Counted from the first letter of the stretch, positions 25,366 to 64,000 are shown. The stretch: 64,000 nt of DNA from Macrostomum lignano (GCA_002269645.1 NIVC01002777.1:1-64000), one strand, 5' to 3'. The notes: generated from the letters alone by a model not told the origin. Translations and numbers: made by a program.

Positions 25366-26299
25366 CTTTGCCGGTTGCCTTCGGCTGATGCCGCTTGATC
25401 TCCATCCACTTGAACGGTGGCGATCCGCCGCTCTCGCCTCCGCCAAGAACGCCGCCGCCGCCTCCGCTGCTGTTGCTGCTGTTGCTGCTATTGTTGTTCG
25501 CGTTGGCTTTGCTTCTGCTTCCGGAAGCATGCGCAGTTGCCGTTGCACTGCCGCCGCTGATGCCGCCGCCAACGCCGACTGACGTTCCGCAGACCGGCGA
25601 CGGGCTGACGCTGAGTTCGCTGCTGCTGCCGCCGCTCGGGCTGTGCGGGCACTGGTGCAGCAGGTGCTGCTGCTGCTGCAGATGCTGCGAACCCGTTGAA
25701 TAGCAGTTGATGTCGCCGCCGCCGCCGCTGCTGCCCCATAAAGAATTCACGGCGGCAGTGCCAACCGCGGATGCTGGCGTAGATTCCTGCTTGATGTAGG
25801 CAGCGGCTGCCGCCGCTGCGGCCGCGGCTGCCGAAGCTGTTGAAGGATACTGCTGCTGCTGACACTGGGAATAGTACTGCTGCTGCTGCTGCTGCTGATG
25901 CAGCACCGGCTGCTCCTGATGCTGCAGGTACAGACCGTAGGGTGAATTTATTTGATGGTGCTGCTGCTGCTGCTGGGGATGCTGGGGATGAAGATGATGC
26001 TGCTGATGAAGCTGCTGCTGTTGGTGATGAGTCTGGAAGGCGGCGGCTGTATGATAAGCAGCGGTAGCTTTCGTAGCTTCTATCAGCGATCCCGGATGTT
26101 GTTGATAAGCCAAGCTATCCAGGTTGCACAGCGAGTAGCCACCAGCTGCACCTCCCGAGTTCATCATTCTCAAAGCGGCAGCTGTGGTCTTGCTGTCACC
26201 GCTGCTCCTGTCACTTACGCCAATGTAAGAAGCGCCTGAGTAGCCTGTAATAATACTGTTGCTGCTGCTGCTGTTGTTGGGGCCAAGGACTCCGGCCAT
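25366..26299 (-). CDS. lab/Hox1: labial/Hox1 homeobox gene, exon 1 (Ser/Gln/His/Ala-rich N-terminus plus hexapeptide)
   Basis: ATG at 26299. PolyQ/polyA/His tracts. Pbx-interaction hexapeptide PPFKWMEIKR just before a canonical GTAAGT donor. Splices in frame to the homeodomain exon. Confidence 0.9.
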
Positions 26300-28171: not shown

Positions 28172-28423
28172 GCCATTATTTGTTGATTGGCGCAGCAGCG
28201 GGGGGGGGAGGTTGGCGGCATCTATTGAAGTCAAAAAGTCAGTTATTGGCTTTTAGGGTGACTCCGTGAGTTGCACAATGCGGCGCGGGGCAATTCAATT
28301 GATATCTGAGACTGCCGAGTTGATTAAGTACAGATGCGGGAAGCATAGGGGGGTTGAGCTTCATTCGTTAAACCGCAAAATAACTCTGAGTAGAGTAAGT
28401 GGTGTGTAGGTTGAATTGAGAGG

Positions 28424-29725
28424 CGGATAGATGAGTGGATAGATGATCGACAGATAAGAGATAGATGAGCGGATAGATGATCGATAGATAAGGGATAGAT
28501 GAGCGGATAGATGAGGGATAGATGAGCGGCTAGATGAGCGGCTAGATGAGGGATAGATGAGCGGCTAGATGAGGGGATAGATGAGCGGCTAGATGAGCGG
28601 CTAGATGAGGGATAGATGAGCAGATAAATGGGCGGATGAGCAGATAGATGAGCGGGTAGATGAGGGATAGATGAGCGGATGAGCAAGTAGATGAGGGATA
28701 GATGAGCGGATGAGCGAGTAGATGAGCGGATAGATGAGGGGATAGATGAGCGGCTAGATGAGCGGCTAGATGAGGGATAGATGATCGATAGATGAGCGGC
28801 TAGATGAGGGATAGATGAGCAGATAAATGGGCGGATGAGCAGATAGATGAGCGGGTAGATGAGGGATAGATGAGCGGATGAGCAAGTAGATGAGGGATAG
28901 ATGAGCGGATGAGCGAGTAGATGAGGGATAGATGAGCGGATGAGCGAGTAGATGAGGGATAGATGAGCGGATGAGCGAGTAGATGAGGGATAGATGAGCG
29001 GATGAGCGAGTAGATGAGGGATAGATGAGCGGATGAGCGAGTAGATGAGGGATAGATGAGCGGATGAGCGAGTAGATGAGGGATAGATGAGCGGATGAGC
29101 GAGTAGATGATGGATAGATGAGCGGATGAGCGAGTAGATGAGGGATGGATGAGCGGATGAGCAAGTAGATGAGGGATAGATGAGCGGATGAGCAAGTAGA
29201 TGAGGGATAGATAAGCGGATGAGCAAGTAGATGAGGGATAGATGAGCGGATGAGCAAGTAGATGAGGGATAGATGAGCGGATGAGCAAGTAGATGAGGGA
29301 TAGATGAGCGGATGAGCGAGTAGATGAGGGATAGATGAGCGGATGAGCAAGTAGATGAGGGATAGATGAGCGGATGAGCAAGTAGATGAGGGATAGATGA
29401 GCGGATGAGCGAGTAGATGAGGGATAGATGAGCGGATGAGCGAGTAGATGAGGGATGGATGAGCGGATGAGCGAGTAGATGAGGGATAGATGAGCGGATG
29501 AGCGAGTAGATGAGGGATAGATGAGCGGATGAGCAAGTAGATGAGGGATAGATGAGCGGATGAGCGAGTAGATGAGGGATAGATGAGCGGATGAGCGAGT
29601 AGATGAGGGATAGATGAGCGGATGAGCGAGTAGATGAGGGATAGATGAGCGGATGAGCAAGTAGATGAGGGATGGATGAGCGGATGAGCAAGTAGATGAG
29701 GGATAGATGAGCGGATGAGCGGATA
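28424..29725. repeat. 31-bp minisatellite (GATAGATGAGCGGATGAGCGAGTAGATGAGG)n
   Basis: Read directly; degenerate at the left end. Confidence 0.95.
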
Positions 29726-34554: not shown

Positions 34555-35832
34555 ATGAGCAGCCGGAGATATCCGTACGCTTCGTCCGTGTCCTCGGCGG
34601 AGTCCAGAGACTACAGGCGGCACAGGCGGCGGCAGGCCAAGCAGCAGAAGCAACTGGCTCTGCCAGACAGCCCTTGCCAGCTGCAGCACCAGCGCCAGCA
34701 CCAGACAGATGCCGCTCCTACTCACGAGGTTCACGTAAACTATGACGACCGGCTCTACCGGCTGACGGGACTTGAGCAGGCGGCCACGTGCCAGGATTTG
34801 ATCTTCGCCCTGCTGTGGTTCCGCAGCTTCCACAGCAGGCGGAAACGCCAGCAGACTCAAAGCCAGATGGAGCGCCAGGAAGCTGAGCTCATGGCCGAGG
34901 CCGTCAAGCACGAGCTGGTGATCGACTTTCCAGGCAGAGTGAAGCGGGTTCGCGGCCACCTGCCGGTGCTGCGACTCCTGACTCACCTTCGTCGGCGAGC
35001 GAACGGGCGGAGCTTCCAGCTGCGGGTTCGTCAGCGGCGATCGGTGGCGATGCTAGCCGCGGCTGCGGCCGCTTCCACAGCCGCTGAAGAGGAGGAGCGG
35101 TCGCTGGAGCTGCGCATTGTCGACTGGGGACCCGGCGACGAGCAGTGCGGACGGCATTGGCGCAATGAGCAGGCGGCGGCCGTGGCGGCGGCGGCGGTGA
35201 CTAGGGGAGGCGCATCGACCAGGAACAGCAGCACCAGAAACGGCGGTGACGGCTGCGGCGGCGAAGATAGCGGCGGAGGCGGCGGAGGGCTGGACCCAGC
35301 CGACAAGGCTCTGATGCTGGAGTGGATGCGAAAGCTGAACTTCCCGGTCGATCGCTTTGACGGCAACGCCGACGAAAGCGGGGGCCGCGACGGTGACGGC
35401 GGCGGGTGCAGCGGCGGCAGAGTGAAAAGCCTTCAGGTCAGCTTTCGGCATCAGACGCGTCGACGCGTGTTTAAAGCGTCAGCTTTGCCACCCGACGTCG
35501 AGGACGATGACGACGAAGACTACGTAGACGAAGACGACGTCGAAGATGACGATGCGGAATTCGGCAAAGAAGAATTCCAAGGCGAGCAGCGGCGTCAGGC
35601 GCAGAGCAGTTGCTACTGCCTGCCAAGCGTCGTGGTTGCCGGCCGTCGAGACGACAGCAGCGACACCGGGGTCGACTGTCTGACGCCGTCAGATTTAACT
35701 GGTACCGCTGGTGCCGCCGCCAGCGAGCTGAACGCCGTGAAAAGTTTGCCCGACAGTGAGAATGCGTGCCGAACTCAGTGCATTATCGAATTGGATTGGC
35801 CGGATTTTGCCTACATCGCTACTCCCGTGTGA
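34555..35832 (+). CDS. RASSF10-like: N-terminal RASSF family (RASSF9/10-like) Ras-association domain protein, 425 aa, intronless
   Basis: EVHVNYDDRLYRLTGLEQAATCQDLIFALL aligns by eye with the RASSF7-10 RA start (xxVW...GLxxxTTCxDVxxxLL). A basic insertion is followed by ELVIDFPGRVKRV...VLRLL. The C-terminal DDSSDTG recalls the SDTG motif of RASSF9/10. Ends in a class I PDZ-binding tail (ATPV*). GC-rich. Confidence 0.72.
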   Translation: MSSRRYPYASSVSSAESRDYRRHRRRQAKQQKQLALPDSPCQLQHQRQHQTDAAPTHEVHVNYDDRLYRLTGLEQAATCQDLIFALLWFRSFHSRRKRQQTQSQMERQEAELMAEAVKHELVIDFPGRVKRVRGHLPVLRLLTHLRRRANGRSFQLRVRQRRSVAMLAAAAAASTAAEEEERSLELRIVDWGPGDEQCGRHWRNEQAAAVAAAAVTRGGASTRNSSTRNGGDGCGGEDSGGGGGGLDPADKALMLEWMRKLNFPVDRFDGNADESGGRDGDGGGCSGGRVKSLQVSFRHQTRRRVFKASALPPDVEDDDDEDYVDEDDVEDDDAEFGKEEFQGEQRRQAQSSCYCLPSVVVAGRRDDSSDTGVDCLTPSDLTGTAGAAASELNAVKSLPDSENACRTQCIIELDWPDFAYIATPV

Positions 35833-36757: not shown

Positions 36758-38280
36758 TTGCGTCAATTAGGATGATGTAGATTGTGGATATAAGAAGCTG
36801 GAACATAGATGTGGCTCAAGGCAGCACAATTATCTGAGCCGTACCTTCAAACCGAAGCATTGAGCCTCATTAAAAAAACAATCAGCTTTCATCACCGCCT
36901 CATCCGTGATTTGTTTTCCATTTCTATTAGAAATAAGCCGCTACCTCCCTTTTCAGTCACTTTTCCTTCGACTTATTGTCCCAATAAGTGTAAAAAAACC
37001 CAATAAATATTCTCTGTATTGAATAATCAGTCTATTAATAACTATTAAAAATCTTTCCGAGTGAAACAGAAAACGGATTTATTCGAGTTTATTTGTCTCC
37101 AGATTCGGGATTCGTCTGATCGATAATGCATTGTCAATGAGTCAGAATGCTGCAGAGAGATATAGGTATAGGGGAGAGAGATGAGACGGTGACACAAAAA
37201 CCATTTATTTTAGAGTATTCATTTTCAATATCCCATAGGTGATCAATCAGGCTCAATAGGGATTTGGCGATAAAGAATGAGCGAGTGCGGGGAGAAGGCA
37301 GAGCTTGAGCTGGGAAACTGACATCATTGATACAAAGAGAAGTCTGCACATGGCGGCTGCTCTCTACCAAAGAGGTCCGGAGTCAGAACTTGGAGTTGAC
37401 GACTCTTCGCCAACACCTCAGCAACTCCAGCTTCTGCTTGTGGGCCTCCTTGGCCCAGGTGTCCAGGTGAGTTAGAGCTCAAGCCCATATAATCTGTTTC
37501 CTTGCTTTGACCGATGACCGGTCATAAGTCAACCTGAGGAGAGTTGGGGAGAAGGAAACGGTTTCGCGTGAGGGAGAGAACTGATAGGGAGGGAGAGACC
37601 GGATGCTTCGATCCTCCTCGCGGGCTCTCTGCCTCTCTGGTCGGCTGCTTTTTTGATCCTTGCTTGCATTTTTGTAGAGACGTCAGGCCTTATAAAATCG
37701 CGGCTTCGCGTAACCAATACTTAATGTTTAAGAAGGTTTCGTTCGCCAGGCTAAGCAGCCTGGTAGCCAAAATAGCTAATTGAATTTTGCGCAGTTACAA
37801 ATGCGTGAAAATATTTATAATTGTGCCTGGAGTCTCTAATTTGTTCCATATAGCTGAGAGAGTTCAGGTGAGAACTCTAACTGAAGGGAGGGTTAACTGA
37901 CTTTGGGTAATTCGTAAGTTATCAAGTATTTGAGTTAAACAGAAAATATCCGCAAAATATTTTCCTGAATCGATTAAGTGCGGCAAAGTATAGTAGTGAG
38001 ACAGTGGATTGCTAATCTATTCTCAATCATAGATGAATAGATTGGATTGCTAATCTAGTCTCAATCATAGAGGATCAGAGTGGAATGCTAATCTAGTCTC
38101 AATCATAGAGGATTAGAGTGGATTGCTAATCTAGTCTCAATCATAGAGGATTAGAGTGGATTGCTAATCTAGTCTCAATCATAGAAGAATAGAGTGGATT
38201 GCTAATCTAGTCTCAATCATAGATGAATAGAGTGGATTGCTAATCTATTCTCAATCATAGAGGAATAGAGTGGATTGCTA

Positions 38281-39651
38281 GACCTGTCTAGAGGCTCTCA
38301 GGAGAGCGCAAGGGCGCGCTTGTCGCACGATCATGAGCGCCCCTCCGTCTGCTCCTTACGATGGCCTCAACGCCTTCCTCAACATTCCTCCGCTGGACAT
38401 CTTTGTCCGCAGGGAAGCGGCTAAGACTGCCCGCCGTCTAGCTGACGCTGGCATTCAAATCCAGCCCCATAGGGCCATGGCTAAGCGCAAGCTTCTGCCC
38501 CACGCTGACCTCTGCCTCAAGGACTTGAGAGACAGCGGCGGGCTCCACGTCCTATCTGACGGCGAACCCCGCACTCTCAACCTCTTTCAGCGCTACAAGG
38601 TCACCATCCCCTCTAGGGATGCTGCCAATGACCACTGGAATTTCCAGGAGGTCCATTGCTACACGGACGGATCCATCAAAGACGGTCGCGCCGGCTTTGG
38701 GGTCTGCATCATCATCAACGGCCGCGTCATTGCCACGCATGCCCAGCACACTGGTAGACTCTCCACAGTCTTCCAGAACGAAGTCCTTGCCATCAGCTCT
38801 TGCGCTGCAGAGCTGAACGCCAAGGTTACGAGAGGAAAGACTATTGTCATCCACTCTGACAGCCAAGCGGCCTTACAGGCCCTTTGCCACACCACAACGA
38901 ACTCCCGGATAGTCGCCGACTGCGCCCGGCAGCTCAACCTCCTGGCCAGAAGCAATACTGTCAGGCTGAAGTGGATCCCAGGGCACGCAGGGTTTCCGGG
39001 GAACGAGCTGGCAGACACCCTCGCCAAGAGGGGCGGCTCTGGCTCTTTCTTCGGCCCTGCCCCCCTGGTCCCTATGCCCTTGACAGTCATCAATCGTCAG
39101 ATCGACGACTGGGCTGACTCCCTCCACAGGGACAGATGGGCGGGCACCCAAAACTGCCGGCAATCTCGTGCCGCGGTTCCTTGCCCGTCTCACAGGCTCA
39201 GAAACATCCTTCTGAACCAGAATCGGAAGGATATTCGAGCCCTTGTCATGACCCTTACCGGCCATGGCTACCTCGCCAGGCACTGCTTCCTCCGAGGCGA
39301 CCTCGAGAGCGAAATTTGCCCCTTTTGCGAGTGCGACAATGAAGATGCTCAGCACTTTGTCTGTCACTGCCCTTTCTTTAACAGAGACCGGCTACGCTAT
39401 CTCGGGCCGAACCCGTCCATTGACGAGGTCTGCCAGCCCGACAGCATCCCACGGCTCATCCAGTTCCTTCGGGCGACTAGACGAGCCAGTTTCTTCCCAA
39501 CGGAAGATCACGCTGCAGGACGGACCGGCGGACCACCCTGACCGGCCCCACGCCTCTGCCTGTCTGCGGGCCTTCAGGGGCTAGCGGAATGGGCGACCCT
39601 CGCCTCCCCGCTGTGTCTACGGACCACCCTGCAGCTAAGTCAAGTAAGTCA
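38281..39651 (+). mobile_element. 5'-truncated non-LTR retrotransposon with RNase H (LOA/R1/I-group-like)
   Basis: 14-bp TSD AGAGTGGATTGCTA at 38267-38280 and 39652-39665. Short 3' UTR with a stem-loop and a TAAGTCAAG-type tandem tail. The ORF is open from the truncation point. Confidence 0.92.
38282..39541 (+). CDS. C-terminal part of LINE ORF2: connection domain, RNase H and CCHC zinc knuckle (5'-partial)
   Basis: RNase H catalytic motifs YTDGS, QNEV, HSDSQAA, WIPGH and GNELAD. Knuckle CPFCECDNEDAQHFVCHC. No stop codons from 38282; the ATG at 38333 is internal. Confidence 0.92.
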   Translation, partial: TCLEALRRAQGRACRTIMSAPPSAPYDGLNAFLNIPPLDIFVRREAAKTARRLADAGIQIQPHRAMAKRKLLPHADLCLKDLRDSGGLHVLSDGEPRTLNLFQRYKVTIPSRDAANDHWNFQEVHCYTDGSIKDGRAGFGVCIIINGRVIATHAQHTGRLSTVFQNEVLAISSCAAELNAKVTRGKTIVIHSDSQAALQALCHTTTNSRIVADCARQLNLLARSNTVRLKWIPGHAGFPGNELADTLAKRGGSGSFFGPAPLVPMPLTVINRQIDDWADSLHRDRWAGTQNCRQSRAAVPCPSHRLRNILLNQNRKDIRALVMTLTGHGYLARHCFLRGDLESEICPFCECDNEDAQHFVCHCPFFNRDRLRYLGPNPSIDEVCQPDSIPRLIQFLRATRRASFFPTEDHAAGRTGGPP

Positions 39652-41643
39652 AGAGTGGATTGCTAATCTAGTCTCAATCATAGATGAATAGAGTGGATTG
39701 CTAATCTAGTCTCAATCATAGAGGAATAGAGTGGATTGCTAATCTATTCTCAATCATAGATGAATACAGTGGATTGCCAATCTAGTCTCAGTCATAGAGG
39801 AATAGAGTGGATTGCTAATCTAATCTCAATCATAGATGAATAGAGTGGATTGCTAATCTAGTCTCAATCATAGATGAATAGATTGGATTGCTAATCTAGT
39901 CTCAATCATAGAGGAATAGAGTGGATTGCTAATCTATTCTCAATCATAGATGAATACAGTGGATTGCCAATCTAGTCTCAGTCATAGAGGAATAGAGTGG
40001 ATTGCTAATCTATTCTCAATCATAGAGGAATCGAATGGATTGCTAATCCAGTCTCAATCATAGAGGAATAGAGTGGATTGCTAATCTAGTCTCAATCATA
40101 GAGGAATAGAGTGGATTGCTAATCTAGTCTCAATCATAGAGGAATAGAGTGGATTGCTAATCTAATCTCAATCATAGAGGAATAGAGTGGATTGCTAATC
40201 TAATCTCAATCATAGAGGAATAGAGTGGATTGCTAATCTAGTCTCAATCATAGATGAATAGAGTGGATTGCTAATCTAGTCTCAATCATAGAGGAATCGA
40301 ATGGATTGCTAATCCAGTCTCAATCATAGAGGAATAGAGTGGATTGCTAATCTATTCTCAATCATAGAGGAATAGAGTGGATTGCTAATCTAGTCTCAAT
40401 CATAGAGGAATAGAGTGGATTGCTAATCTAATCTCAATCATAGAGGAATAGAGTGGATTGCTAATCTAATCTCAATCATAGAGGAATAGAGTGGATTGCT
40501 AATCTAGTCTCAATCATAGATGAATAGAGTGGATTGCTAATCTAGTCTCAATCATAGATGAATAGAGTGGATTGCTAATCTAGTCTCAATCATAGAAGAA
40601 TAGAGTGGATTGCTAATCTAGTCTCAATCATAGAGGAATAGAGTGGATTGCTAATCTAGTCTCAATCATAGATGAATAGAGTGGATTGCTAATCTAGTCT
40701 CAATCATAGAAGAATAGAGTGGATTGCTAATCTAGTCTCAATCATAGATGAATAGAGTGGATTGCTAATCTAGTCTCAATCATAGATGAATAGAGTGGAT
40801 TGCTAATCTAGTCTCAATCATAGATGAATAGATTGGATTGCTAATCTAGTCTCAATCATAGAGGAATAGAGTGGATTGCCAATCCAGTCTCAGTCATAGA
40901 GGAATAGAGTGGATTGCTAATCTAATCTCAATCATAGATGAATAGAGTGGATTGCTAATCTAGTCTCAATCATAGATGAATAGAGTGGATTGCTAATCTA
41001 TTCTCAATGATAGAGGATTAGAGTGGATTGCTAATCTAGTCTCAATCATAGAGGATTAGAGTGGATTGCTAATCTAGTCTCAATGATAGAGGATTAGAGT
41101 GGATTGCTAATCTAGTTTTGACTATGAGTTCAGAAGCTGCAACTCTTCAAGTATTGTTTCAAGGATGCGGTAGCATACTGTTAATAAATTTACCAGCATC
41201 ACTGCCTTTCAAACGTATCTACAGTCCTACCTGATTGGCACAATATTTTCCTAGTTAAATTGTCTTTCTTCCCAAAAGTTTCCAGGGTCATGGCGCAGTT
41301 TGGATGGGGAAATGTCGCAGTTCGAAAGCCCTCAATATGATGAGGCGCAAACTTCGGCGTGTCCCCAGATCTTGTCCTTCAGGACAGCCCGTCTATGTTG
41401 AATCAGGATGTTGTGGCCACCTGACTTCAGCCTAGCATTAGTCGAGAGCCATGCGTTGCTGCCCCCCGTTCGCTCTACCCTGGCCCGTGAATAAACAGGA
41501 AAATTTTTGTTACTGAAAAAGCATGGTGGGTCAGCCAGCAACCAGCTTTCGACTTGCGCTGCCCCCCCCCTCAAGGAGGCCCAAGACCGGAGCCTGAACT
41601 GCCGAATCTACATTTAGACAGCTGTGGGCCCGCTGCAGTTATC

Positions 41644-43070
41644 GTGACAATTGTCTCATTGTTATCTCAAACGATTATACTGAATATTACTGAATTCAGT
41701 GACAATTGTCTCATTGTTATCTCAAACGATTATACTGAATATTACTGAATTCAGTGACAATTGTCTCATTGTTATCTCAAACGATTATACTGAATATTAC
41801 TGAATTCAGTGACAATTGTCTCATTGTTATCTCAAACGATTATACTGAATATTACTGAATTCAGTGACAATTGTCTCATTGTTATCTCAAACGATTATAC
41901 TGAATATTACTGAATTCAGTGACAATTGTCTCATTGTTATCTCAAACGATTATACTGAATATTACTGAATTCAGTGACAATTGTCTCATTGTTATCTCAA
42001 ACGATTATACTGAATATTACTGAATTCAGTGACAATTGTCTCATTGTTATCTCAAACGATTATACTGAATATTACTGAATTCAGTGACAATTGTCTCATT
42101 GTTATCTCAAACGATTATACTGAATATTACTGAATTCAGTGACAATTGTCTCATTGTTATCTCAAACGATTATACTGAATATTACTGAATTCAGTGACAA
42201 TTGTCTCATTGTTATCTCAAACGATTATACTGAATATTACTGAATTCAGTGACAATTGTCTCATTGTTATCTCAAACGATTATACTGAATATTACTGAAT
42301 TCAGTGACAATTGTCTCATTGTTATCTCAAACGATTATACTGAATATTACTGAATTCAGTGACAATTGTCTCATTGTTATCTCAAACGATTATACTGAAT
42401 ATTACTGAATTCAGTGACAATTGTCTCATTGTTATCTCAAACGATTATACTGAATATTACTGAATTCAGTGACAATTGTCTCATTGTTATCTCAAACGAT
42501 TATACTGAATATTACTGAATTCAGTGACAATTGTCTCATTGTTATCTCAAACGATTATACTGAATATTACTGAATTCAGTGACAATTGTCTCATTGTTAT
42601 CTCAAACGATTATACTGAATATTACTGAATTCAGTGACAATTGTCTCATTGTTATCTCAAACGATTATACTGAATATTACTGAATTCAGTGACAATTGTC
42701 TCATTGTTATCTCAAACGATTATACTGAATATTACTGAATTCAGTGACAATTGTCTCATTGTTATCTCAAACGATTATACTGAATATTACTGAATTCAGT
42801 GACAATTGTCTCATTGTTATCTCAAACGATTATACTGAATATTACTGAATTCAGTGACAATTGTCTCATTGTTATCTCAAACGATTATACTGAATATTAC
42901 TGAATTCAGTGACAATTGTCTCATTGTTATCTCAAACGATTATACTGAATATTACTGAATTCAGTGACAATTGTCTCATTGTTATCTCAAACGATTATAC
43001 TGAATATTACTGAATTCAGTGACAATTGTCTCATTGTTATCTCAAACGATTATACTGAATATTACTGAAT
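41644..43070. repeat. 55-bp highly homogeneous minisatellite (GTGACAATTGTCTCATTGTTATCTCAAACGATTATACTGAATATTACTGAATTCA)n
   Basis: About 26 copies with no variants seen; no spacers. Confidence 0.97.
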
Positions 43071-44006
43071 GTCACTGAATGTCACTGAATGTCACTGAAT
43101 GTCACTGAATTTCACTGAATATCACTGAATGTCACTGAAAGTCACTGAAAGTCACCGAAAGTCACTGAATGTCACTGAATGTCACTGAATGTCACTGAAT
43201 TTCATTGAATATCACTGAATAACACAGAATGTCACTGAAAGTCACTGAAAGTCACTGAAAGTCACTGAAAGTCACTGAAAGTCACTGAAAGTCACTGAAA
43301 GTCACTGAAAGTCACTGAAAGTCACCGAAAGTCACTGAATGTCACTGAATGTCACTGAATGTCACTGAATGTCACTGAATGTCACTGAATTTCACTGAAT
43401 GTCACTGAATTTCATTGAATTTCACTGAATATCACTGAATGTCACTGAAAGTCACTGAAAGTCACCGAAAGTCACTGAATGTCACTGAATGTCACTGAAT
43501 GTCACTGAATTTCATTGAATATCACTGAATAACACAGAATGTCACTGAAAGTCACTGAAAGTCACTGAAAGTCACTGAAAGTCACTGAAAGTCACTGAAA
43601 GTCACTGAATGTCACTGAATGTCACTGAAAGTCACTGAAAGTCACTGAAAGTCAATGAAAGTCAATGAAAGTCACTGAATGTCACTGAATGTCACTGAAA
43701 GTCACTGAATGTCACTGAAAGTCACTGAAAGTCACTGAAAGTCACTGAATGTCACTGAATGTCACTGAAAGTCACTGAAAGTCACTGAAAGTCACTGAAA
43801 GTCACTGAAAGTCACTGAAAGTCACTGAAAGTCACCGAAAGTCACTGAATGTCACTGAATGTCACTGAATGTCACTGAAAGTCACTGAATGTCACTGAAT
43901 TTCATTGAATTTCACTGAATATCACTGAATGTCACTGAAAGTCACTGAAAGTCACCGAAAGTCACTGAATGTCACTGAATGTCACTGAATGTCATTGAAT
44001 GTCACT
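43071..44006. repeat. 10-bp minisatellite (GTCACTGAAT/GTCACTGAAA)n
   Basis: Directly abuts the 55-bp array. Confidence 0.97.
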
Positions 44007-48737: not shown

Positions 48738-49475
48738 GAGTATTCGATTCAGTGAATTGGAATATTTAGTGTAGATCCTGAATGGGATGACGTTATTACA
48801 CTGCTTTTTGCGGTAAAGTCATATATATTGGGTATAAGAGTGAGAGGGGTTCTCCTCAGATACAAAAAATAAATCATAGTTAGTTTTTTCGACCGAATCG
48901 ATGCTTTCCAACGGTCTGTCTCTCTTGCCGTCCCATCTCTTCTCCTCCCCCTCTTCTCCGCCGCTAAATAATTAATTACCCCAAAAAACCCACAGCCATA
49001 AATGCGGGCCTCGCGGCAAGGCGAGAGGCGAACAAACCGCAGTCAGCGCCCCATCTGCAACCAGTTACTTATAGCCGTCTCTATGCTTCACTCACTGGCC
49101 TCTTTGCCATCCAAACCCATCTTCAGACTGCACGCATAAAATTTACAGTTTTTTCCTCCTATCAACATTTATATAATTAATTGCTGGATTTTTCTTCTAT
49201 TGGACAGTGTTGGGAGATACGAAAAAAAACTTTTTTTGTGAGTAGGATATTATGTTTTAGACTAATGCAGCTTTACTCTCTGCAGCTTTGTGCGACTGAG
49301 AAATACTTTTCTATGAATGTCAGCATTTATTTCATATTTACTGTATTATACGAGTACATCGGATAATACATTCCATAAATATTTATGTATATTAAGTCAT
49401 TTACAGCAACCGACAGTAATTGACAGTAAACGACAGACTGCTGTGAATTGCAGCACTGTCAGCAGATGACGGGAC

Positions 49476-50475
49476 ACTGACAGCAACTGAGAGACATAGA
49501 CAGCAACTGAGAGACATTGACAGCAACTGAGAGACATTGACAGCAACTGAGAGACATTGACAGCAAATGAGAGACATTGACAGCAACTGAGAGACATAGA
49601 CAGCAACTGAGAGACATTGACAGCAACTGAGAGACATTGACAGCAACTGAGAGACATTGACAGCAAATGAGAGACATTGACAGCAACCGAGAGACATTGA
49701 CAGCAACTGAGAGACATTGACAGCAACTGAGAGACATTGACAGCAAATGAGAGACATTGACAGCAACCGAGAGACATTGACAGCAACTGAGAGACATTGA
49801 CAGCAACTGAGAGACATTGACAGCAAATGAGAGACATTGACAGCAACTGAGAGACATTGACAGCAACCGAGAGACATTGACAGCAACCGAGAGACATTGA
49901 CAGAAACTGAGAGACATTGACAGCAACTGAGAGACATTTACAGAAACTGAGAGACATTGACAGCAACTGAGAGACATTGACAGCAACTGAGAGACATTGA
50001 CAGAAACTGAGAGACATTGACAGCAACTGAGAGACATTGACAGAAACTGAGAGACATTGACAGCAACCGAGAGACATTGACAGCAACCGAGAGACATTGA
50101 CAGAAACTGAGAGACATTGACAGCAACAGAGAGACATTGACAGAAACTGAGAGACATTGACAGAAACTGAGAGACATTGACAGAAACAGAGAGACATTGA
50201 CAGCAACTGAGAGACATTGACAGCAACAGAGAGACATTGACAGCAACTGAGAGACATTGACAGCAAATGAGAGACATTGACAGCAACTGAGAGACATTAA
50301 CAGCAATCGAGAGACATTGACAGCAACTGAGAGACATTGACAGCAACCGAGAGACATTGACAGCAACAGAGAGACATTGACAGCAACTGAGAGACATTGA
50401 CAGAAACTGAGAGACATTGACAGAAACAGAGAGACATTGACAGCAACTGAGAGACATTGACAGCAACTGAGAGAC
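49476..50475. repeat. 20-bp minisatellite (GACAGCAACTGAGAGACATT)n
   Basis: About 50 copies read directly. Confidence 0.96.
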
Positions 50476-51714
50476 AGTAACGGAGAGACACTGACAGGAA
50501 CATTGACAGACATCTATTAAAAGCAATTGATAGTCGCTGAAATAAAAAATTATAATTTAATATACGAACGTAACCAATCAAATATCAACAGAAGAGCACT
50601 TTCTTCTTTAAAAATTCAGCAAAAGTCAGCGTATTGCTGACTCAGGATTGAGAATGAAATATTTAGAGATATTCACCAGCCAGACACATAGCTATCCATA
50701 ATTCCAAGAAACCGCAGTCACATCACGCTTTCCGGTCGGCTCTTAAGCAGGCCTGCTCAAGCGCAAACATTGTCGCTCGATGCCCAGATGCTAGCCTGAC
50801 TGACAGATCTCCCAGTGTGGGAGCATGAGGAGGATTGAAGCGGGATGCAGGGGAATACTGGATCCTCTCAGCTCGATTCTGTCTTTAATTTGCCCCAGGC
50901 CAGGGCTATACTAGCTGTGCTCAGTAATCCTTTTCCCGTGTTCGTGCTCAGACGCAATTTCAATCGAATCAGTTCACAGCATTGCACCATGCAGATCGGA
51001 GCACTGCGTACAACAGTTGTTGAGAGTTAGCTGGGCTTTAAATAAACTGCACGGGCCTGCATGTTCTCGGTCGAGATAATCATATAGTTCTGCATTCCCT
51101 ATATCATAGCGCCCAATCGAACGGATAGGAGGCCAGAGAGTTTTTACCTTAGTTTGACAATTCGAAGCTGCATGCATGAGTCATGGCAGCAGGATGTGCA
51201 CTGTAAATCATAAGGGTCCGTGTGGGGTCCGTTTTGTCAAAACGGACCCTAGGGTCCGAAATATATGTTTTTACTTCGCACCTCTCACACATACAGTACC
51301 ACATAAATGTTATGTGCAATGGCTTAAAATGCATCTTAAGTGAAGGTAACGCTTGTTTCTCACTCTTTTATACAAATGTAAACTTCATGCAATGTCCAAG
51401 AACTGCGTATGAACTGATTACATAGTTTCCATTTTATTTTCACTATTCTCCAATTAAAATTTTCATTTAATGCTTATAAGGTAAAACAGAAAATAAACAA
51501 TTGGCATAAAAGATTATTATAACGTTTCTTTTGTTGTACCGTGCCTGTGTGTTTTGAGACTTTGATCCGTACGCAGGTGACGATTTAAAAAGCAACGCGC
51601 TCTCATCACCCTGCCGTGTTTTATAGTTAACTCTGCTATAAGTTTCAGATTTTCGGCCTTGCGTAGCTGTATAATTGTAGCAATCATCGTGATAATGTAG
51701 TTATATTTTGTTGA

Positions 51715-54153
51715 ATGTATAAATGTCAGTTTTGTTCTGTTGTTAGTAGTGATATATTTAAATTATTAACTCACATAAAATGTCATCATTCGTTTGGCTG
51801 CAAGTGGTTTAAATGTCCTGCTAAAGATTGTTTCCATTCTTGCACATCTATTGAGTCACTAAGAGCACATGCTAAAAGGGTTCATACAGTATCATCAGAA
51901 TCAATTAATCAAGCAAATATAGACACTCGACCCATAGACATAGGCATAGACTCAGCTAATGTACCTGGGACCTCATCTACTAATGATAGTATAAATGTTG
52001 ATTTAGCCAATGGTGATGATGTTCTTAATCAAAGCAGTGAAGAGTGTCGTGAAAAACTGAAGCAGGAATTGGCTTTAAATTTTGTATATTTTTATTTAAA
52101 AGCAAAGGATTTTTTTATTGTTTCTAAGCATAAGTCTATGCAACTAAGCCTATTAGTTAAGGAAATAGTGACTGAATTTGCAAGCAATTATTTTAAACTA
52201 TTTAAACAGTTTTTAAAGGAGTTTTACCCAGCATTACTTACAGGAAACTTTTTGGAATTACTTGACCTACAAGAAATGATTGATATATCTTTAAGTGATC
52301 TATTAAATGATAGAAAGATATTAAATATTTTAAAAACTGATTTCAATCTAGTGCAACCCACTGAATATATTGATAAAGAAACACAACGAAAAATACAGTA
52401 TGTTTCTATTGCAGAAACACTGAAATCAGTTATAAAGAATGAACATCTATTAAAATATATTTTGCAAGTTGATAAAACTAATAGCTGTTTCTTTAATTCC
52501 CATTATTATTATTCATATATATATCCAATGGCTAAAGAAGGAATATATTTAAAGTTGTATTCTGATGAAATAGAAGTATGCAATCCAATAGGTTCTGCTA
52601 AGACAAGACATAAGCTATTTGTTATTTATTTTAATATTTTAAATATCCCTGACTATGTTAATTCATCCTTAAATCTATGCTTCCTTAATATGATATGTAT
52701 AGATAGTAATATTAAAGCACTTGGTCTCAACAAATGTATAGCACCTTTAGTTGCTGAGTTAAATGAATTGTACTTTAATGAATTGAGTATTAATGAAAAT
52801 ATAATGCTACCTGTATTAGCATGCTTTATGACTGGGGATAATCTTTCAATGAATCAATTTTTTGGGTTAAGAAAATGCTTTTCTAGTGGTCATATTTGTA
52901 GATATTGTACAATATCATTTCAAGATCTATGTAATATTGACATGGAAAATCTGAGTAAATTATTTAATTTCAATAGTCGAGATCATACCTCTATTATTGA
53001 TTCATCAGAGAGGCTTTGCCATGGGTTCGTTTCAACTTCTCTTCTTTTTGATGTGGCATATATTAGTTTACCATATTTTTTTCCACCTGATATAATGCAT
53101 GATATTCTAGAAGGAATCTCCCATATTGTAGTAGGACTGGTATTTGAATATGCAATAGATCAACTACATGTTAGTATTGATGAAATCAACTCTAGGCTTT
53201 CTAAAATCCCATCTATTTCATTTCCAACAGTAACTAAATATAATGTTCGAAACTATCATTTAACATGTACAGCTAGTCAAATGATGCACTTATTACAATA
53301 TTTTGGTATTTTATTTGGCAATTTGTTTGATACTAAGAATGAAGTATGGGAATTGTATATATATCATCGCTTATTTATAGATATTATTTTTGCACCAATA
53401 TCTTGTAGCCAAACAATTAGTATAGACTATTTAAAGTTTTTAGTTGCAGCACAAATAGAACTTATATATAAGCTTGCAAAGGGTAATCCAAAATATAAAT
53501 GCAAATTGCATTATATATGCCATTATCCTTCTTTATTTTCTTTTTATAATGGTTTATATTATCTTTGGTCAATGAGAAGTGAAGCCCATCATCAAGTAGT
53601 AAAAGAAATTAGTAGAAAATCTAAGAATTATATTAATGTCTCATACACATGTGCAAAAAAGCTCCAAGTTCAAAAAGCTCTAACAATTAAGCACTTTGTG
53701 CCAATTGATTATAATTGTTCTCATTCAACAGCTGTTCAACTTAATTCTATTTTATTTCTTCCAGATCAAATTAAATTATGTGAAAAATTTAAAATCAAAA
53801 GAAGTGATATAGGCCACTTTTGCTTTTCTACTAATAGTCTCGTATATAAAGGTTTTCATTATAAGACTGCAACTACAAACAATCGATATGCTGTGCCGAT
53901 ATTATCTCAAGGAACATTATTATTCTTATTAATACACCAAATTTTGCAAATAAATAATAGGTGGGTTGTCGTTTGTAAGAAAATTGAATCTACATTTCAA
54001 TGTCATTTTAATTGTTATTTGTGTGTAGTTAGGAATGATAGTAATTGTTTTATTGCACCTGGGGATCATGTTAATCATCAACCTATACCACTATTCTGTT
54101 ATAATGGTCAATTATGTTGTGCACTAAAATATTCCCCTATTGTTGATGGTTAG
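51715..54153 (+). CDS. EnSpm/CMC-type transposase with two N-terminal C2H2 zinc fingers, 812 aa
   Basis: Zinc fingers CQFC...HIKCHH and CPAKDC...HAKRVH. Animal EnSpm motifs LYSDEIEVCNPIG...HK, GDNLS...FS...CRYC, PPDIMHDILEG and WSMRSEAHH (putative D-D-E triad with CxxC and DxxH). No stop codons. Confidence 0.88.
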   Translation: MYKCQFCSVVSSDIFKLLTHIKCHHSFGCKWFKCPAKDCFHSCTSIESLRAHAKRVHTVSSESINQANIDTRPIDIGIDSANVPGTSSTNDSINVDLANGDDVLNQSSEECREKLKQELALNFVYFYLKAKDFFIVSKHKSMQLSLLVKEIVTEFASNYFKLFKQFLKEFYPALLTGNFLELLDLQEMIDISLSDLLNDRKILNILKTDFNLVQPTEYIDKETQRKIQYVSIAETLKSVIKNEHLLKYILQVDKTNSCFFNSHYYYSYIYPMAKEGIYLKLYSDEIEVCNPIGSAKTRHKLFVIYFNILNIPDYVNSSLNLCFLNMICIDSNIKALGLNKCIAPLVAELNELYFNELSINENIMLPVLACFMTGDNLSMNQFFGLRKCFSSGHICRYCTISFQDLCNIDMENLSKLFNFNSRDHTSIIDSSERLCHGFVSTSLLFDVAYISLPYFFPPDIMHDILEGISHIVVGLVFEYAIDQLHVSIDEINSRLSKIPSISFPTVTKYNVRNYHLTCTASQMMHLLQYFGILFGNLFDTKNEVWELYIYHRLFIDIIFAPISCSQTISIDYLKFLVAAQIELIYKLAKGNPKYKCKLHYICHYPSLFSFYNGLYYLWSMRSEAHHQVVKEISRKSKNYINVSYTCAKKLQVQKALTIKHFVPIDYNCSHSTAVQLNSILFLPDQIKLCEKFKIKRSDIGHFCFSTNSLVYKGFHYKTATTNNRYAVPILSQGTLLFLLIHQILQINNRWVVVCKKIESTFQCHFNCYLCVVRNDSNCFIAPGDHVNHQPIPLFCYNGQLCCALKYSPIVDG

Positions 54154-54624
54154 TTTTTTCTTTAAGAACAATTTATATTAGTTAGTTGACAAAATTTGTC
54201 TATATGTCACTTTTAAAGCAAAAATATTTCAATCAATGTAAATAATGCATGTGGTAGTTTTGTTATGAGACTCCATGCAACCTGCAACATGTAGGCAGAA
54301 AAGAAGGCAGCTACTTTTTTCTTTGGTGTCCCAATTTGGATTTTTCAACTTGGTTTATGATGACTTCCTTTCATGGTTGTCTGACAGACACTTGAGTCCA
54401 AAGTGCTGTACCGGTTTTAACACTTTCAACGCCATAAAAGTTGTTTGCTGGCTACTTTCCCATTGTTTCAATATGTATATACCCATATGCAGTATAATAT
54501 GTATATACCTATAGTACTTCTATACTATTTTGTATGTTTTTAGTTGTCACTTATTGTACTTCTATTGTCTATTAGTATTTATGTAATATAATCCTTAGTT
54601 TCGAAGCATGGTACATTGCTACTA

Positions 54625-55152
54625 TTTCAATGAGACATGTTGCAGTAGCAGTCTTGGGCTAGTCAGTCATGAGATATGATGGAAAAGAACAAGCATTTGC
54701 TGACAAAGAGGGAAACTTTGTGTCTACAAGTCCCCACCCATGGCTATGCTGAACTGTTTCAATGAGACATGTTGCAGTAGCAGTCTTGGGCTAGTCAGTC
54801 ATGAGATATGATGGAAAAGAACAAGCATTTGCTGACAAAGAGGGAAACTTTGTGTCTATAAGTCCCCACCCATGGCTATGCTGAACTGTTTCAATGAGAC
54901 ATGTTGCAGTAGCAGTCTTGGGCTAGTCAGTCATGAGATATGATGGAAAAGAACAAGCATTTGCTGACAAAGAGGGAAACTTTGTGTCTATAAGTCCCCA
55001 CCCATGGCTATGCTGAACTGTTTCAATGAGACATGTTGCAGTAGCAGTCTTGGGCTAGTCAGTCATGAGATATGATGGAAAAGAACAAGCATTTGCTGAC
55101 AAAGAGGGAAACTTTGTGTCTACAAGTCCCCACCCATGGCTATACTGAACTG
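54625..55152. repeat. Four near-identical 132-bp tandem copies between the transposon ORFs
   Basis: Units start at 54625, 54757, 54889 and 55021. Confidence 0.95.
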
Positions 55153-55529
55153 TGTTAGTGAGGCATTGTTGGTTGCAATACTTGTGATGCTTATGAGCGG
55201 GTATACAGTCATTGAAAAAAATATGGATGCTCTGCTACTATGTCTTCAATTTTAAAACATGAAAGGTGCATACTTCTACTGATGTAATGTTGTTTGTGTA
55301 CCAATTTGCTGTTGAGGGGTCCTATATATACTGTATATTGAATTATGTATGTATTGAGTAATGTTTTCTACAGTAGCAGATTTGTATCTCACTGTTATTC
55401 TCCATGTACTGTATACTGGAATTAGAATTTGACATTCATTTGAGATGATGAAATAGATATGAGCACAATGTCTGTTTTGCCTGTGTTACCTATTAGATTT
55501 AATCATCTTCATATGTCAAATTCTAATTT

Positions 55530-57149
55530 ATGCTGCGAATCACCAATCGTGACGGTTCACGGAAGAGGCTAGTCAAGCCGTCCTCATTCAACCAGCTTCT
55601 TGAGCAGGGATGTGCAAAACTGGAGCTGGAGACTACCTGCGAGATTCAGGTTGTCACGGCAGATGGCTTTGTGGTGGATGATGACGACTTCCTGCCTGAC
55701 CTGGCAGCTAGCAAGACCGAGCTTATCTTCCTGCGTCAAGGGGAGGCTTGGGCACCTCCAGCACCAGCAGCTAGCAATGTGGCTACGCTGCCGAGTAATG
55801 ACGCTTCAGGAAGCGAGACTGCCGGCGACACAGCGCCTGACGATCAGACTGCAGCAGCCTCGACAAGTGCAGCTTCTGCTGAAGGAAGTAAGCCATGGCC
55901 ACTTCTTTACCGGCTGCCGCGGATGCCAGACTTGGATGAGGCGCTGCAAGATCTGCGTCGCAATCCGAAACGTGGCGAAGATTTTAAGATGAAAGCGACG
56001 TTTGTGAATACGTTTCTGAAGTACACGATAAATGACATCTTCCGGAACTACAAGTCAATGAGCAACCCATACCTATCCGCTGGTGAGATACGGGACGTTT
56101 GCAATGCAATTATTTCGACTTACCCGGGCCTCAGCGACACTTCACCAGATGGCCGTCAGTTTTGGCGGGTCAAGATTACTCGTCGACTGAAAGAGCTGCG
56201 CAGTAAGATCCTGCCGCAATGCAGCAGTCCCATTGTTTTAAACAGCCGGGAGAAGTTCGGACGCAAGCGTGTACCCTTGGACGCTGCAGAGAAGCGCGCC
56301 AATATTGAAGCAGCGGTGGTGGCAGATGACGGCGGTGATTCTGAAGAAGACGTTGACCCAGTCAAAGAGCCTGAAGAGAAGCGCCTCCTACTGGACCAGT
56401 CAGATGCTTGCAGTATTGCTAAGAGCGTCTACCTGGGCTCCTGCGAGATCGACGAGGTTCCACCAAGGCATGAGGAGGCCCGGAAGTCCCTCAACCAGAG
56501 CTTCAACCTAATGCAGATCAACGACGTCCTTGAAGCCATGAAGGATCTCTTCGCTGTCAGAATTTTGCGTTGCCAGGAACTAACCATCCAGGAGCAGGTA
56601 AACCTGTACAAGCCACTCGTCCTCTGCCCGGTCATCCTGCAGGAGGCCTACCTCATGATTGACACGTACAGAAGCAACGCCAAAACGGACTACATTCTGC
56701 CAGAGTCGCCAAGCGACATCGGCAAGAACATCCGCACAGCACTTCTTCAGCGTGTCTGGCCAAAGAGAATCACAATGAAAAACTACAAGATGTGCCAGCC
56801 TTTCCTGGTGGACACTGATGACGATGAGAAGAAGATTGCTGCAGCATTTTGCCTTCTTCTTGGCCGCACTGGCTGCAATCCATCAGTCGTTTTTTCGCCT
56901 GAGCTGCCCATCCACATCATTCAGCAGGGTGATGTCTGGCGCGGTGTCGCTATCAATGGAGCCGAGCTGCTTTTCGACTCCCCTGGAGACATCGTTGTCT
57001 GCTTCACCGCGTGCTTTGTGGCTTTCAATCTGCAGCATATCCCGTGCATTGAATCATTTCTGGAAGCCATTGAGGTTCTGTCGAAGCTCCGGAAGCGCAG
57101 CGCTGTTTCGCGGCGCCCTGCAAAAACTCTTCTCGATGCACTTGGCTAA
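55530..57149 (+). CDS. Transposon accessory protein with an N-terminal CIDE-N (CAD)-like domain, 539 aa
   Basis: Residues 1-76 (LRITNRDGSRKRLVKPSSFNQLLEQGCAKL...VVTADGFVVDDDDFLPDL...TELIFLRQGEAWAP) align by eye with the CIDE-N consensus (FRVxNxDRS...ASSLxEL...LVLEEDGTxVDxEEFF...LxKGQKW). The C-terminus (CFTACFVAFNLQH...FLEAI) resembles the second-ORF proteins of animal EnSpm elements. Confidence 0.8.
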   Translation: MLRITNRDGSRKRLVKPSSFNQLLEQGCAKLELETTCEIQVVTADGFVVDDDDFLPDLAASKTELIFLRQGEAWAPPAPAASNVATLPSNDASGSETAGDTAPDDQTAAASTSAASAEGSKPWPLLYRLPRMPDLDEALQDLRRNPKRGEDFKMKATFVNTFLKYTINDIFRNYKSMSNPYLSAGEIRDVCNAIISTYPGLSDTSPDGRQFWRVKITRRLKELRSKILPQCSSPIVLNSREKFGRKRVPLDAAEKRANIEAAVVADDGGDSEEDVDPVKEPEEKRLLLDQSDACSIAKSVYLGSCEIDEVPPRHEEARKSLNQSFNLMQINDVLEAMKDLFAVRILRCQELTIQEQVNLYKPLVLCPVILQEAYLMIDTYRSNAKTDYILPESPSDIGKNIRTALLQRVWPKRITMKNYKMCQPFLVDTDDDEKKIAAAFCLLLGRTGCNPSVVFSPELPIHIIQQGDVWRGVAINGAELLFDSPGDIVVCFTACFVAFNLQHIPCIESFLEAIEVLSKLRKRSAVSRRPAKTLLDALG

Positions 57150-57579
57150 CTGACATTTACAACTGATTTTCCACTTTCCCTTCCTATTTGTCTATTGTGT
57201 GTCGTCTTCTCCACTTTCACGTCTTGCAGATGCTACCTGTTCTTAAAGCTTGCCGTATTTTTCACTTTCCCTTCCTATTTGTATGTTGCGTGTAAGTGAC
57301 ACAATTTTGAATTAGGTGTTGTGTTGAATTATAGAACACGCCGCGTATTCTAATGGTTTTTTGCCATTGTGGCAATACATTATGCATAGTACAAAATTAG
57401 TAATATAATATAAGAATTGCAAACATCATTATCTTCGCAATTGCCAATACCTGATTAGCAAAGCCTGCAGATTGCTGCCTCCTACAACTCGTTTTTGGGA
57501 AATAGTATTCGCCTTTTTCATTTTTTCCTTTTGGCGGGCTCTTTCTGTATAATAAAAAGGAGCGTGAGCGACCTGAAAA

Positions 57580-57880
57580 AGTGGACCATTTTTCGGACCC
57601 CTCTTTTGAGGGTCCGTATATAGCGACGCTGCGGACCCTATAATGGACCCCTAAGAACGGACCATCGTGGACCTTTTTTCGGACCCCTCTTTTGAGGGTC
57701 CGTATATAGCGACGCTGCGGACCCTATAATGGACCCCTAAGAACGGACCATCGTGGACCTTTTTTCGGACCCCTAATTACGGACCTCCTTGAAAAACCGG
57801 ACCCCTATGGGTCCCTATATAGCGACGGACCGGACCCTAACTGCGGACCCTCGTCGGACCCTTTTTCGGACCTTTTAAAA
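57580..57880. repeat. Right subterminal repeat block of the transposon (86-bp unit, about 2 copies plus diverged parts, GGACC-rich)
   Basis: GGACCC recurs at 57595, 57681 and 57767 (86-bp period). Confidence 0.9.
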
Positions 57881-58124
57881 TTACAGTGTGCCTGGAGTTT
57901 GGCGAATGGCATTAATATGCTTTTGAGAGACCGTGTGGCTGGGACCCATAGATCTTCTTGAGTAAGCTCATAAGGTTGGTGAAATCTTCTCAAAGGAACT
58001 GAGTCAGGGGGGCGGTATCAGAAAGCGAATTATGCAGGGGAATTATAAAGGCTATAGCCTAGCCGCCTTGGCATCTTTTACTGCCTCCGGAGCTAATAAA
58101 AATCGGATTACGGGACAGTCGCAG

Positions 58125-63600: not shown

Positions 63601-64000
63601 AATGGGAATCGCTCCCTTGCTCAGAGGCGAATCGCTCATTTGCTTAGAGGGGAATCGCTCATTTGCTCAGAGGGGAATCGCTCATTTGCTCAGAGGGGAA
63701 TCGCTCATTTGCTCAGAGGGGAATCGCTCATTTGCTCAGAGGCGAATCGCTCATTTGCTTAGAGGGGAATCGCTCATTTGCTCAGAGGGGAATCGCTCAT
63801 TTGCTCAGAGGGGAATCGCTCATTTGCTCAGAGGGGAATCGCTCATTTGCTCAGAGGGGAATCGCTCATTTGCTCAGAGGGGAATCGCTCATTTGCTCAA
63901 AGGCGAATCGCTCATTTGCTTAGAGGGGAATCGCTCATTTGCTCAGAGGGGAATCGCTCATTTGCTCAGAGGGGAATCGCTCATTTACTAAGGGGGAATT
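63601..64000. repeat. 23-bp minisatellite (GAGGGGAATCGCTCATTTGCTCA)n in the TEAD intron
   Basis: Read directly; runs off the end of the window. Confidence 0.95.

Follow-up and report, generated by a model that had tools for sequence, protein, structure and literature searches.

A CACTA-like transposon of the flatworm Macrostomum lignano whose accessory protein begins with a CIDE-N domain

Introduction

In animals, the CIDE-N domain is seen as belonging to the machinery for apoptotic DNA fragmentation and for lipid droplets, and two-gene CACTA-like transposons are already known from animal genomes. The two meet in a stretch of DNA from the flatworm Macrostomum lignano (positions 1 to 64,000 of contig NIVC01002777.1, assembly GCA_002269645.1; the whole of this 64-kb stretch is referred to as the window), which contains a complete DNA transposon of the CACTA/Mirage/Chapaev (CMC) group. 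Its first open reading frame (ORF1) encodes a transposase and its second (ORF2) an accessory protein with a CIDE-N head. A CMC transposon with an accessory protein of this kind is what is new here, and it raises the question of what a mobile element would use a CIDE-N domain for. An earlier note, drawn up from the sequence alone, had recognized the element and, by eye, the domain, and had put forward several ideas on its function, which are weighed below against the anatomy of the element, its relatives and the known CIDE-N proteins.

A CIDE-N domain at the head of ORF2

The gene and its first domain are:

55530-57149, + strand: ORF2, encoding an intact 539-aa accessory protein (ORF call)
55533..55751, + strand: CIDE-N domain of ORF2, aa 2-74 (Pfam PF02017, PDB sequence matches and Foldseek)

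In the full-length protein, the Pfam model PF02017 aligns to residues 2-74 over nearly its whole length with 43.1 bits (E = 4.4e-11), well above the gathering score of 23.5, and residues 1-80 taken separately give 48.3 bits (E = 1e-12). CIDE-N was the only Pfam family found in ORF2 with E-values up to 10 allowed, and no competing family came close. Likewise, a sequence search of the PDB with ORF2 gave meaningful scores only for CIDE-N domains, namely those of CIDE-A, DREP2, ICAD, CAD, FSP27, CIDE-B and DREP4. In an AlphaFold2 model of ORF2, built with eight relatives, the domain has a β-β-α-β-α-β topology with a predicted local distance difference test score (pLDDT) of about 76-89. When this model was compared with the PDB using Foldseek, ranks 1-7 were all taken by CIDE-N domains (DREP2, FSP27, CIDE-A, DREP3 and CIDEC), with target-normalised template modelling (TM) scores of 0.72-0.84 and root-mean-square deviations (rmsd) of 1.4-1.9 Å, and ubiquitin, SUMO, UFM1 and PB1 appeared only at later ranks (TM 0.55-0.64, rmsd about 3-4 Å); the Foldseek E-values are weak (about 1e-2) owing to the 539-residue query. 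The by-eye call thus holds and, judged by profile and modelled fold, the head of ORF2 is a genuine CIDE-N domain; a match to a generic ubiquitin/PB1 fold only, for which the earlier note had allowed, is ruled out.

The T-A-D-G, VVDDDDF and GEAW motifs are confirmed in ORF2, and the domain contains basic residues (R3, R11, K12, R13, K16 and K30, the first five of them in the N-terminal strand region) as well as acidic ones (D45 and D50-D53). Among characterized CIDE domains, those with both a basic and an acidic patch (DFF40, DREP2, DREP4 and FSP27) form head-to-tail oligomers or filaments, and DFF45 has the acidic patch only; in ICAD, residues D66, D71, D72 and D74 are reported to contact CAD (PMC6292858). 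In the HMMER alignment to mouse ICAD, these four aspartates correspond to D45, D50, D51 and D53 of ORF2. On the basic side, R36 of CAD aligns with K30 of ORF2, which is invariant in the family, and K32 of CAD aligns with Q26 in the window copy and with K or R in most paralogues. Both oppositely charged patches are retained in the ORF2 domain, where they are predicted to serve as contact surfaces.

A complete and recently mobile element

The element is bounded and subdivided as follows:

51197..51198, no strand: left 2-bp target-site duplication (TSD), TG (flanks compared here and in the second copy, L001)
51199-57888: complete transposon, 6,690 bp, Macrostomum lignano NIVC01002777.1 (GCA_002269645.1)
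51199..51220, + strand: left terminal inverted repeat (TIR) CACTGTAAATCATAAGGGTCCG (inverted-repeat pair I6; homology to the second copy starts here)
51214..51258, no strand: left subterminal repeats, 4x GGTCCG/CGGACC (motif positions)
54621..55153, no strand: internal tandem repeat of 132 bp x 4 in the spacer between ORF1 and ORF2 (Tandem Repeats Finder (TRF), 99% matches; also present in the second copy)
57583..57873, no strand: right subterminal array of ~20 GGACC(C)/CGGACC repeats (motif positions and TRF)
57581-57774, no strand: 86-bp tandem duplication within the right array (TRF)
57867..57888, - strand: right TIR ending ...ATTACAGTG (pair I6; homology to the second copy stops here plus TG)
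57889..57890, no strand: right 2-bp TSD, TG (flanks compared here and in L001)

A second copy is located on contig NIVC01001793.1 of the same assembly (L001, 5665-12358) and is 99.97% identical across 6,694 bp. Outside the TIRs, homology between the two copies extends only across a 'TG' at either end; since it stops there, these positions are taken as the true boundaries of the mobile unit. The flanks beyond are unrelated DNA: the nearest downstream gene encodes a peptidase M13 at one locus and a TEA/YBD-domain protein at the other. The copies differ at only two nucleotides, 52245 and 55259, and the encoded proteins are identical, so that the same ORF2 protein is present on two contigs of GCA_002269645.1. 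The other of these contigs, NIVC01002777.1, matches the window with 100% identity across the 18.5 kb that were compared, and homologues bear the name Macrostomum lignano in NCBI and UniProt, which makes this free-living flatworm the host. Near-identity at two unrelated loci, with identical proteins, points to very recent transposition. This DNA transposon is autonomous, has moved recently and may still be active.

Its TIRs are 22 nt long, imperfect (77% complementary) and of the CACTG...CAGTG type, giving the element the termini CACTGTAA...TTACAGTG; the left TIR is unique in the window, and by chance no further occurrence would be expected. A TSD had been claimed in the earlier note without a length. 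It is 2 bp long, as seen in four independent insertions: TG flanks the window copy and the L001 copy, and TA flanks two related elements, a complete 6,068-bp relative with a perfect 14-nt TIR on a metagenome contig (L006, 205-6272; TA at both ends) and a complete relative in M. lignano (L003, 906-7509; TA at both ends). An alternative reading, in which a 4-bp TSD 'GTGC' adjoins ACTG termini, suits the window copy alone and was rejected: the corresponding flanks of L001 are CTGC and GTGG, which do not match each other, whereas a 2-bp TG suits both copies.

The CACTGTAA terminus is common to the window element, L003 and L006. Four GGTCCG/CGGACC motifs are found in the first 60 bp of the element and ~20 in its final 300 bp; the rest of the window contains few. 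Both the motif and a similar spacing from the CACTGTAA terminus are kept in L003 and L006, although the proteins of these elements share only about 40-51% identity with the ones encoded here. The description of the locus as a complete CACTA-type transposon is thereby borne out, with termini that are mirrored by the limits of the second copy, a TSD and two intact ORFs of the lengths given in the earlier note.

The transposase and the class of the element

ORF1 is the longer of the two genes:

51715-54153, + strand: ORF1, encoding an intact transposase of 812 aa (C2H2 zinc fingers at the N-terminus, DDE core of the CMC type)

Transposases of the EnSpm/CACTA, Mirage, Chapaev and Transib groups have as their signature the order D...D...C(2)C...H(3-4)H...E (PMC12730594). 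The candidate catalytic and signature residues of ORF1 follow it, with D284 (LYSDE), D375 (GDNLS), C395-R-Y-C398, H599-Y-I-C-H603 and E623, and D284, D375, C395-x2-C398, H599-x3-H603 and E623 are invariant across a 10-sequence alignment (A2). Homologues of ORF1 were found in M. lignano, in the tick Ixodes scapularis and in metagenomes and other assemblies. ORF1 itself has no significant Pfam match; Transposase_21 was matched by six of its ten homologues (best E 4.5e-5) and Plavaka by five of the ten (best E 4.5e-6), all below threshold, and the family consensus matches Transposase_21, Plavaka and DUF4218 colinearly, again under the gathering scores in each case.

CMC elements have 5'-CA...TG-3' termini (CACTA/CACTG) and a short TSD of 2-5 bp, and in classical En/Spm the TSD is 3 bp. 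Here, the ends are of the CACTG type and the TSD is 2 bp. Because the transposase signature coincides with CACTG termini, subterminal repeats and a TSD inside the range of 2-5 bp, there is good support in the sequence for placing the element in the CMC group. The narrower name EnSpm, used in the earlier note, is a different matter: it is correct as far as the CMC group goes, and subterminal arrays are present at both ends as in EnSpm sensu stricto, but the 2-bp TSD is unlike the 3 bp of classical En/Spm. An accessory protein of the TnpA type (Pfam Transposase_24) was likewise absent from the Pfam results for ORF2, even at E-values up to 10.

Recurrence of the two-gene architecture

Word-indexed homologue searches with ORF2 or its alignment returned the query alone, probably owing to domination by its low-complexity linkers, and 1.84 billion representative proteins were searched exhaustively with HMMER instead. 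This search gave 18 matches, a third of them (six) full-length or nearly so. Five relatives (P0014-P0018, the last N-terminally truncated), originating in M. lignano or in a JGI metagenome, are 44-47% identical to ORF2, and a sixth, P0019, comes from the Logan assembly of run ERR11523656 and is 29% identical. The CIDE-N domain scores over the Pfam threshold in P0014, P0015, P0017 and P0019, at no more than 29-46% identity to the window protein, and falls just under it in P0016 (23.2 bits against 23.5); the truncated P0018 has no CIDE-N match. A metagenome scan gave no confirmed relative.

Wherever the surrounding DNA was fetched, an ORF2 homologue lies 0.5-1.5 kb downstream of an ORF1 homologue on the same strand: in two M. 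lignano loci (L003 and L004), on the metagenome contig (L006) and in an AT-rich locus of another organism, from run ERR11523656 (L005). In L005, ORF2 is split, with the C-terminal domain in a separate 108-aa ORF ~870 bp downstream (5118-5988), an arrangement that, from the sequence, implies an intron or an insertion. The earlier note had allowed for the possibility that other copies lack ORF2; instead, L001, L003, L004, L005 and L006 all have versions of it. As the second copy, the two M. lignano loci, the metagenome contig and L005 all carry the gene, ORF2 is, on this comparison of loci, a stable component of the element.

In Ixodes scapularis, many near-identical copies of an 809-814-aa transposase homologue are present. 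At the one locus fetched (L009, CM063347.1, transposase 7001-9445), nothing resembling ORF2 was detected over a distance of 7 kb; the tick lineage may have a one-gene element, or its accessory gene may have diverged past detection.

The two genes differ markedly in composition:

ORF1: GC 0.29; GC at third codon positions (GC3) 0.18; CpG observed/expected (o/e) 0.24
ORF2: GC 0.535; GC3 0.59; CpG o/e 0.84

The same split is found in L003, L004 and L006; in L005 it is less pronounced. Because it is shared across subfamilies with a protein identity of only about 45-50%, it is old and presumably maintained; self-limiting codon usage is one possible cause, and differences between the two genes in expression or methylation are others.

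A conserved core with different heads

Behind the CIDE-N domain, the model of ORF2 shows a disordered low-complexity linker (aa 77-118) and, between the two folded parts listed here, a disordered acidic and low-complexity linker (aa 244-298):

55890..56264, + strand: WPxxYxLP motif and, behind it, a basic helical domain, together aa 121-245 (pI 10.1, pLDDT about 80-90)
56430..57146, + strand: second helical domain and small C-terminal α/β domain with an AFNLQH motif, aa 301-539 (pLDDT mostly >85)

Residues W123, P124 and P130 are invariant, a fish protein (see below) included. The core was modelled with high confidence, pLDDT exceeding 90 in many blocks. The core matched no Pfam family, a profile search of PDB sequences found no relative for it, and Foldseek with a separate model of aa 119-539 gave no fold match in the PDB (best E 0.9, probability <0.15). 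Given its charge, the basic helical domain (aa 121-245) is a candidate for the part that binds DNA or the transposase.

The core is also found with other heads. A weak match in the exhaustive search, the cichlid protein P0026 (Maylandia zebra LOC143421845), aligns over the WP motif, the basic helical domain and the C-terminal domain, and an ORF1-like remnant (tblastn E 3e-31) is located directly upstream of its gene (L007, Maylandia zebra CM083346.1; 8133-9312 and 10001-16584). Using a hidden Markov model (HMM) of the ORF2 family, the WP motif and the exons following it were also found downstream of transposase homologues in two environmental assemblies, L010 (4389-4646 and 5604-7457) and L008 (10369-10983). 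The N-terminal exon of the fish gene matches Pfam PB1 (E 8.8e-4, 19.6 bits with a gathering score of 23.6); in L008, the exon immediately preceding the WP exon matches the SAM model over half a domain only (E 6.4e-3, below the gathering threshold); and the N-terminal exon of L010 has no Pfam match, looks beta-grasp-like by eye and aligns with the PB1-like module of the fish. These PB1-like and SAM-like assignments are probable, not proven.

PB1 and SAM modules polymerise head-to-tail. If the assignments hold, one accessory core would have been combined with three different modules that have head-to-tail polymerisation in common, and interchangeable polymerisation modules on a conserved accessory core are possibly the more general finding. 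The architecture recalls vertebrate SAMD3-like genes, which might be domesticated relatives; a literature search returned nothing relevant on SAMD3 with transposase.

The suggestion that CIDE-N is ancestral to these ORF2 proteins finds no support in this comparison. An hhalign comparison of the flatworm CIDE-N alignment with the module of the fish and L010 cores detected no similarity (probability 0.5%), and at the sequence level CIDE-N is therefore rejected as the ancestral module, although divergence beyond recognition within the beta-grasp fold is conceivable.

What might the accessory protein do?

En/Spm of maize offers the natural starting point, since its TnpA protein binds the subterminal repeats and is needed, together with the transposase, for transposition (PMC1636069). 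We propose that ORF1, a zinc-finger DDE transposase, cuts at the CACTG termini and inserts with a 2-bp duplication, and that ORF2, by analogy, would be the functional counterpart of TnpA, though not its homologue. Through its CIDE-N domain, ORF2 would undergo charge-driven head-to-tail self-association, as DFF40, DREP and CIDE proteins do, and would multimerise on the GGTCCG subterminal arrays, four repeats on the left and about 20 on the right; the resulting assembly could then help to pair the two ends of the element, or recruit or regulate the transposase. Among the functional ideas of the earlier note, scaffolding through CIDE-N fits the evidence best, and we give self-assembly on the subterminal repeats about an even chance. 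DNA binding by ORF2, its polymerisation, its binding to the transposase and any role in synapsis or effect on transposition are all inferred.

Several observations weigh against this proposal. The basic patch is weaker in the window copy, where Q26 stands opposite K32 of CAD, and the ORF2 family does not preserve the initial E of 'EDG'. The core of ORF2 shows no recognisable DNA-binding fold in the PDB profile search or in Foldseek, and the C2H2 fingers of the transposase could themselves read the GGTCCG repeats. The acidic patch is exactly the one that ICAD uses to bind CAD, which leaves room for hetero-association with a host protein. Finally, the PB1 and SAM assignments are sub-threshold, the latter on half a domain.

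That hetero-association is the basis of a host-directed alternative, in which the CIDE-N domain of ORF2 would act as a decoy that binds host DFF40/CAD or DFF45/ICAD and so damps apoptotic DNA fragmentation or protects the DNA of the element at transposition breaks. All four acidic residues through which ICAD contacts CAD have acidic counterparts in ORF2 (D45, D50, D51 and D53; PMC6292858), and the nearest cellular relatives of the domain are DFFA-like: a crustacean DFFA (P0027), a snail protein with CIDE-N and DFF-C domains (P0028) and, in the PDB, CIDE-A and ICAD. There is also a precedent in the small CIDE_N proteins of clade-a betabaculoviruses, which those who described them proposed to bind host DFFA or DFFB (PMC5245865). 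However, related elements carry PB1-like or SAM-like modules, which have no known link to DFF, at the same position, and for this reason the property under selection seems to be generic self-assembly. The domain is, moreover, permanently fused to a large conserved core, unlike the stand-alone baculovirus proteins; no CAD or ICAD of the M. lignano host is among the matches of the exhaustive ORF2 search, and no literature was found on DFF in flatworms. We consider a decoy quite unlikely, and favour self-assembly over binding to CAD or ICAD because both charge patches are kept and other polymerising modules occupy the same position. A bolder form of the idea, in which the domain is a working interface to the apoptotic nuclease system of the host, with ORF2 binding CAD or ICAD and sensing or blunting cell death after the element's own breaks, for example in neoblasts and the germline, would be a long shot.

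ORF2 might instead regulate copy number or expression, as a repressor that coats the repeats or as a chromatin or condensate tether, with CIDE-N giving multivalency and the protein being dispensable for the chemistry of transposition. TnpA of maize both represses and activates its own element (PMC1636069), the long disordered linkers (aa 77-118 and 244-298) would suit multivalent assemblies, and the conserved contrast in composition between ORF1 and ORF2 suggests that the two genes are expressed or controlled very differently. Yet polymerisation on the repeats is common to this regulatory role and to TnpA-like self-assembly, so that the two overlap and are not separable by sequence; we regard a purely regulatory protein as unlikely, if well worth keeping in mind. 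That ORF2 is simply a captured fragment of a host gene, acquired as in Pack-CACTA transduplication and without function for the element, is very improbable. Its GC content is indeed host-like (0.535, with 0.457 for the window) next to an AT-rich transposase gene, but a full-length ORF in the same position and orientation is kept across M. lignano subfamilies (~45% identity) and at 29% identity in P0019, in which the CIDE-N domain is still detectable; the core motifs are invariant, and in fish and other assemblies, too, related transposases accompany the core. The compositional split itself is kept across subfamilies and hence old.

Comparison with known systems

With maize En/Spm (TnpD and TnpA), the element shares CACT(A/G) termini, subterminal arrays at both ends and a DDE transposase with the C(2)C...H(3-4)H arrangement accompanied by a second protein (PMC1636069, PMC12730594). 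It differs from En/Spm in its TSD (2 bp rather than 3 bp) and in having two separate intronless ORFs, whereas the En/Spm proteins arise by alternative splicing of one transcript; in addition, ORF2 shows no similarity to TnpA by Pfam, and TnpA has no CIDE-N domain. Also comparable are the TRC elements of animals (SmTRC1 of Schistosoma mansoni), Mirage and Chapaev, with animal hosts that include a flatworm, a 2-bp TSD, a transposase related to Transposase_21 (a model matched here only below threshold, by homologues and the family consensus) and extra products unlike plant TnpA (PMC1636069). Compared by description, the termini of SmTRC1 differ in that they begin with CCC and not CACTG, and its extra proteins PrA and PrB are reported to be without detectable relatives, with no CIDE-N domain described (PMC1636069).

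DFF40/CAD, DFF45/ICAD, Drosophila DREP1-4 and vertebrate CIDE-A, CIDE-B and FSP27 have the same domain as ORF2 by profile and fold, at the N-terminus and with both patches. In contrast to these cellular proteins, ORF2 has no CAD nuclease, DFF-C or CIDE-C domain by Pfam, its remainder is unrelated to theirs, its gene is located beside a transposase gene inside a mobile element, and it departs from them in the EDG motif, as noted above. The clade-a betabaculovirus proteins (for example MyunGV#8 ORF38) resemble ORF2 in that a parasitic genetic element encodes CIDE-N (PMC5245865); unlike ORF2, in which the domain heads a conserved multidomain accessory factor of 539 aa, they are 91-111 aa long and consist of the domain alone.

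Automatic annotation already names some M. lignano gene models 'CIDE-N domain-containing protein'. The literature on CIDE-N with transposon, transposase, EnSpm or CACTA contained no link between them, Repbase and Dfam being outside the scope of the search; within that scope, there is no sign that the domain is routinely documented in this family, as the earlier note had considered it might be.

Other features of the window

Outside the element, the window is unusually dense in minisatellites (1-50600 and 63604-63999), with >20 distinct arrays (period 4-93 bp, up to 3 kb long), many with extreme strand skew. Examples are:

16452-19438: minisatellite array, 21 bp x 140
39652-41116: minisatellite array, 38 bp x 39
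41644-43078: minisatellite array, 55 bp x 26

The long 'ORFs' at 4352-5929, 9853-11336, 16226-19560, 28324-29691 and 49397-50581 are frames through such repeats and were rejected as genes. A 402-aa ORF at 38333-39541 (+ strand) has an RNase H domain (Pfam PF00075, E 4e-15) and is flanked on both sides by the same 38-bp satellite, at 38003-38280 and at 39652-41116; this ORF probably represents either a piece of a retroelement or a gene for RNase H inside satellite DNA. Two ATG-initiated ORFs, at 25313-26299 (- strand, 328 aa) and 34555-35832 (+ strand, 425 aa), have no Pfam match.

Concluding remarks

The element gives CIDE-N a third context, as a conserved and selected part of the accessory protein of a transposon, and is, with the baculoviruses, the second example of a genomic parasite that carries the domain. 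Were the domain an interface to CAD or ICAD after all, mobile elements would also be vehicles that move CIDE-N modules between animal lineages. If the pattern of exchangeable heads holds, the second ORFs of animal CMC elements would serve multivalent assembly on subterminal repeats, in a TnpA-like manner that can be tested. As near-identical copies are present in a model flatworm that is capable of transgenesis, the system is directly testable and may become a tool.

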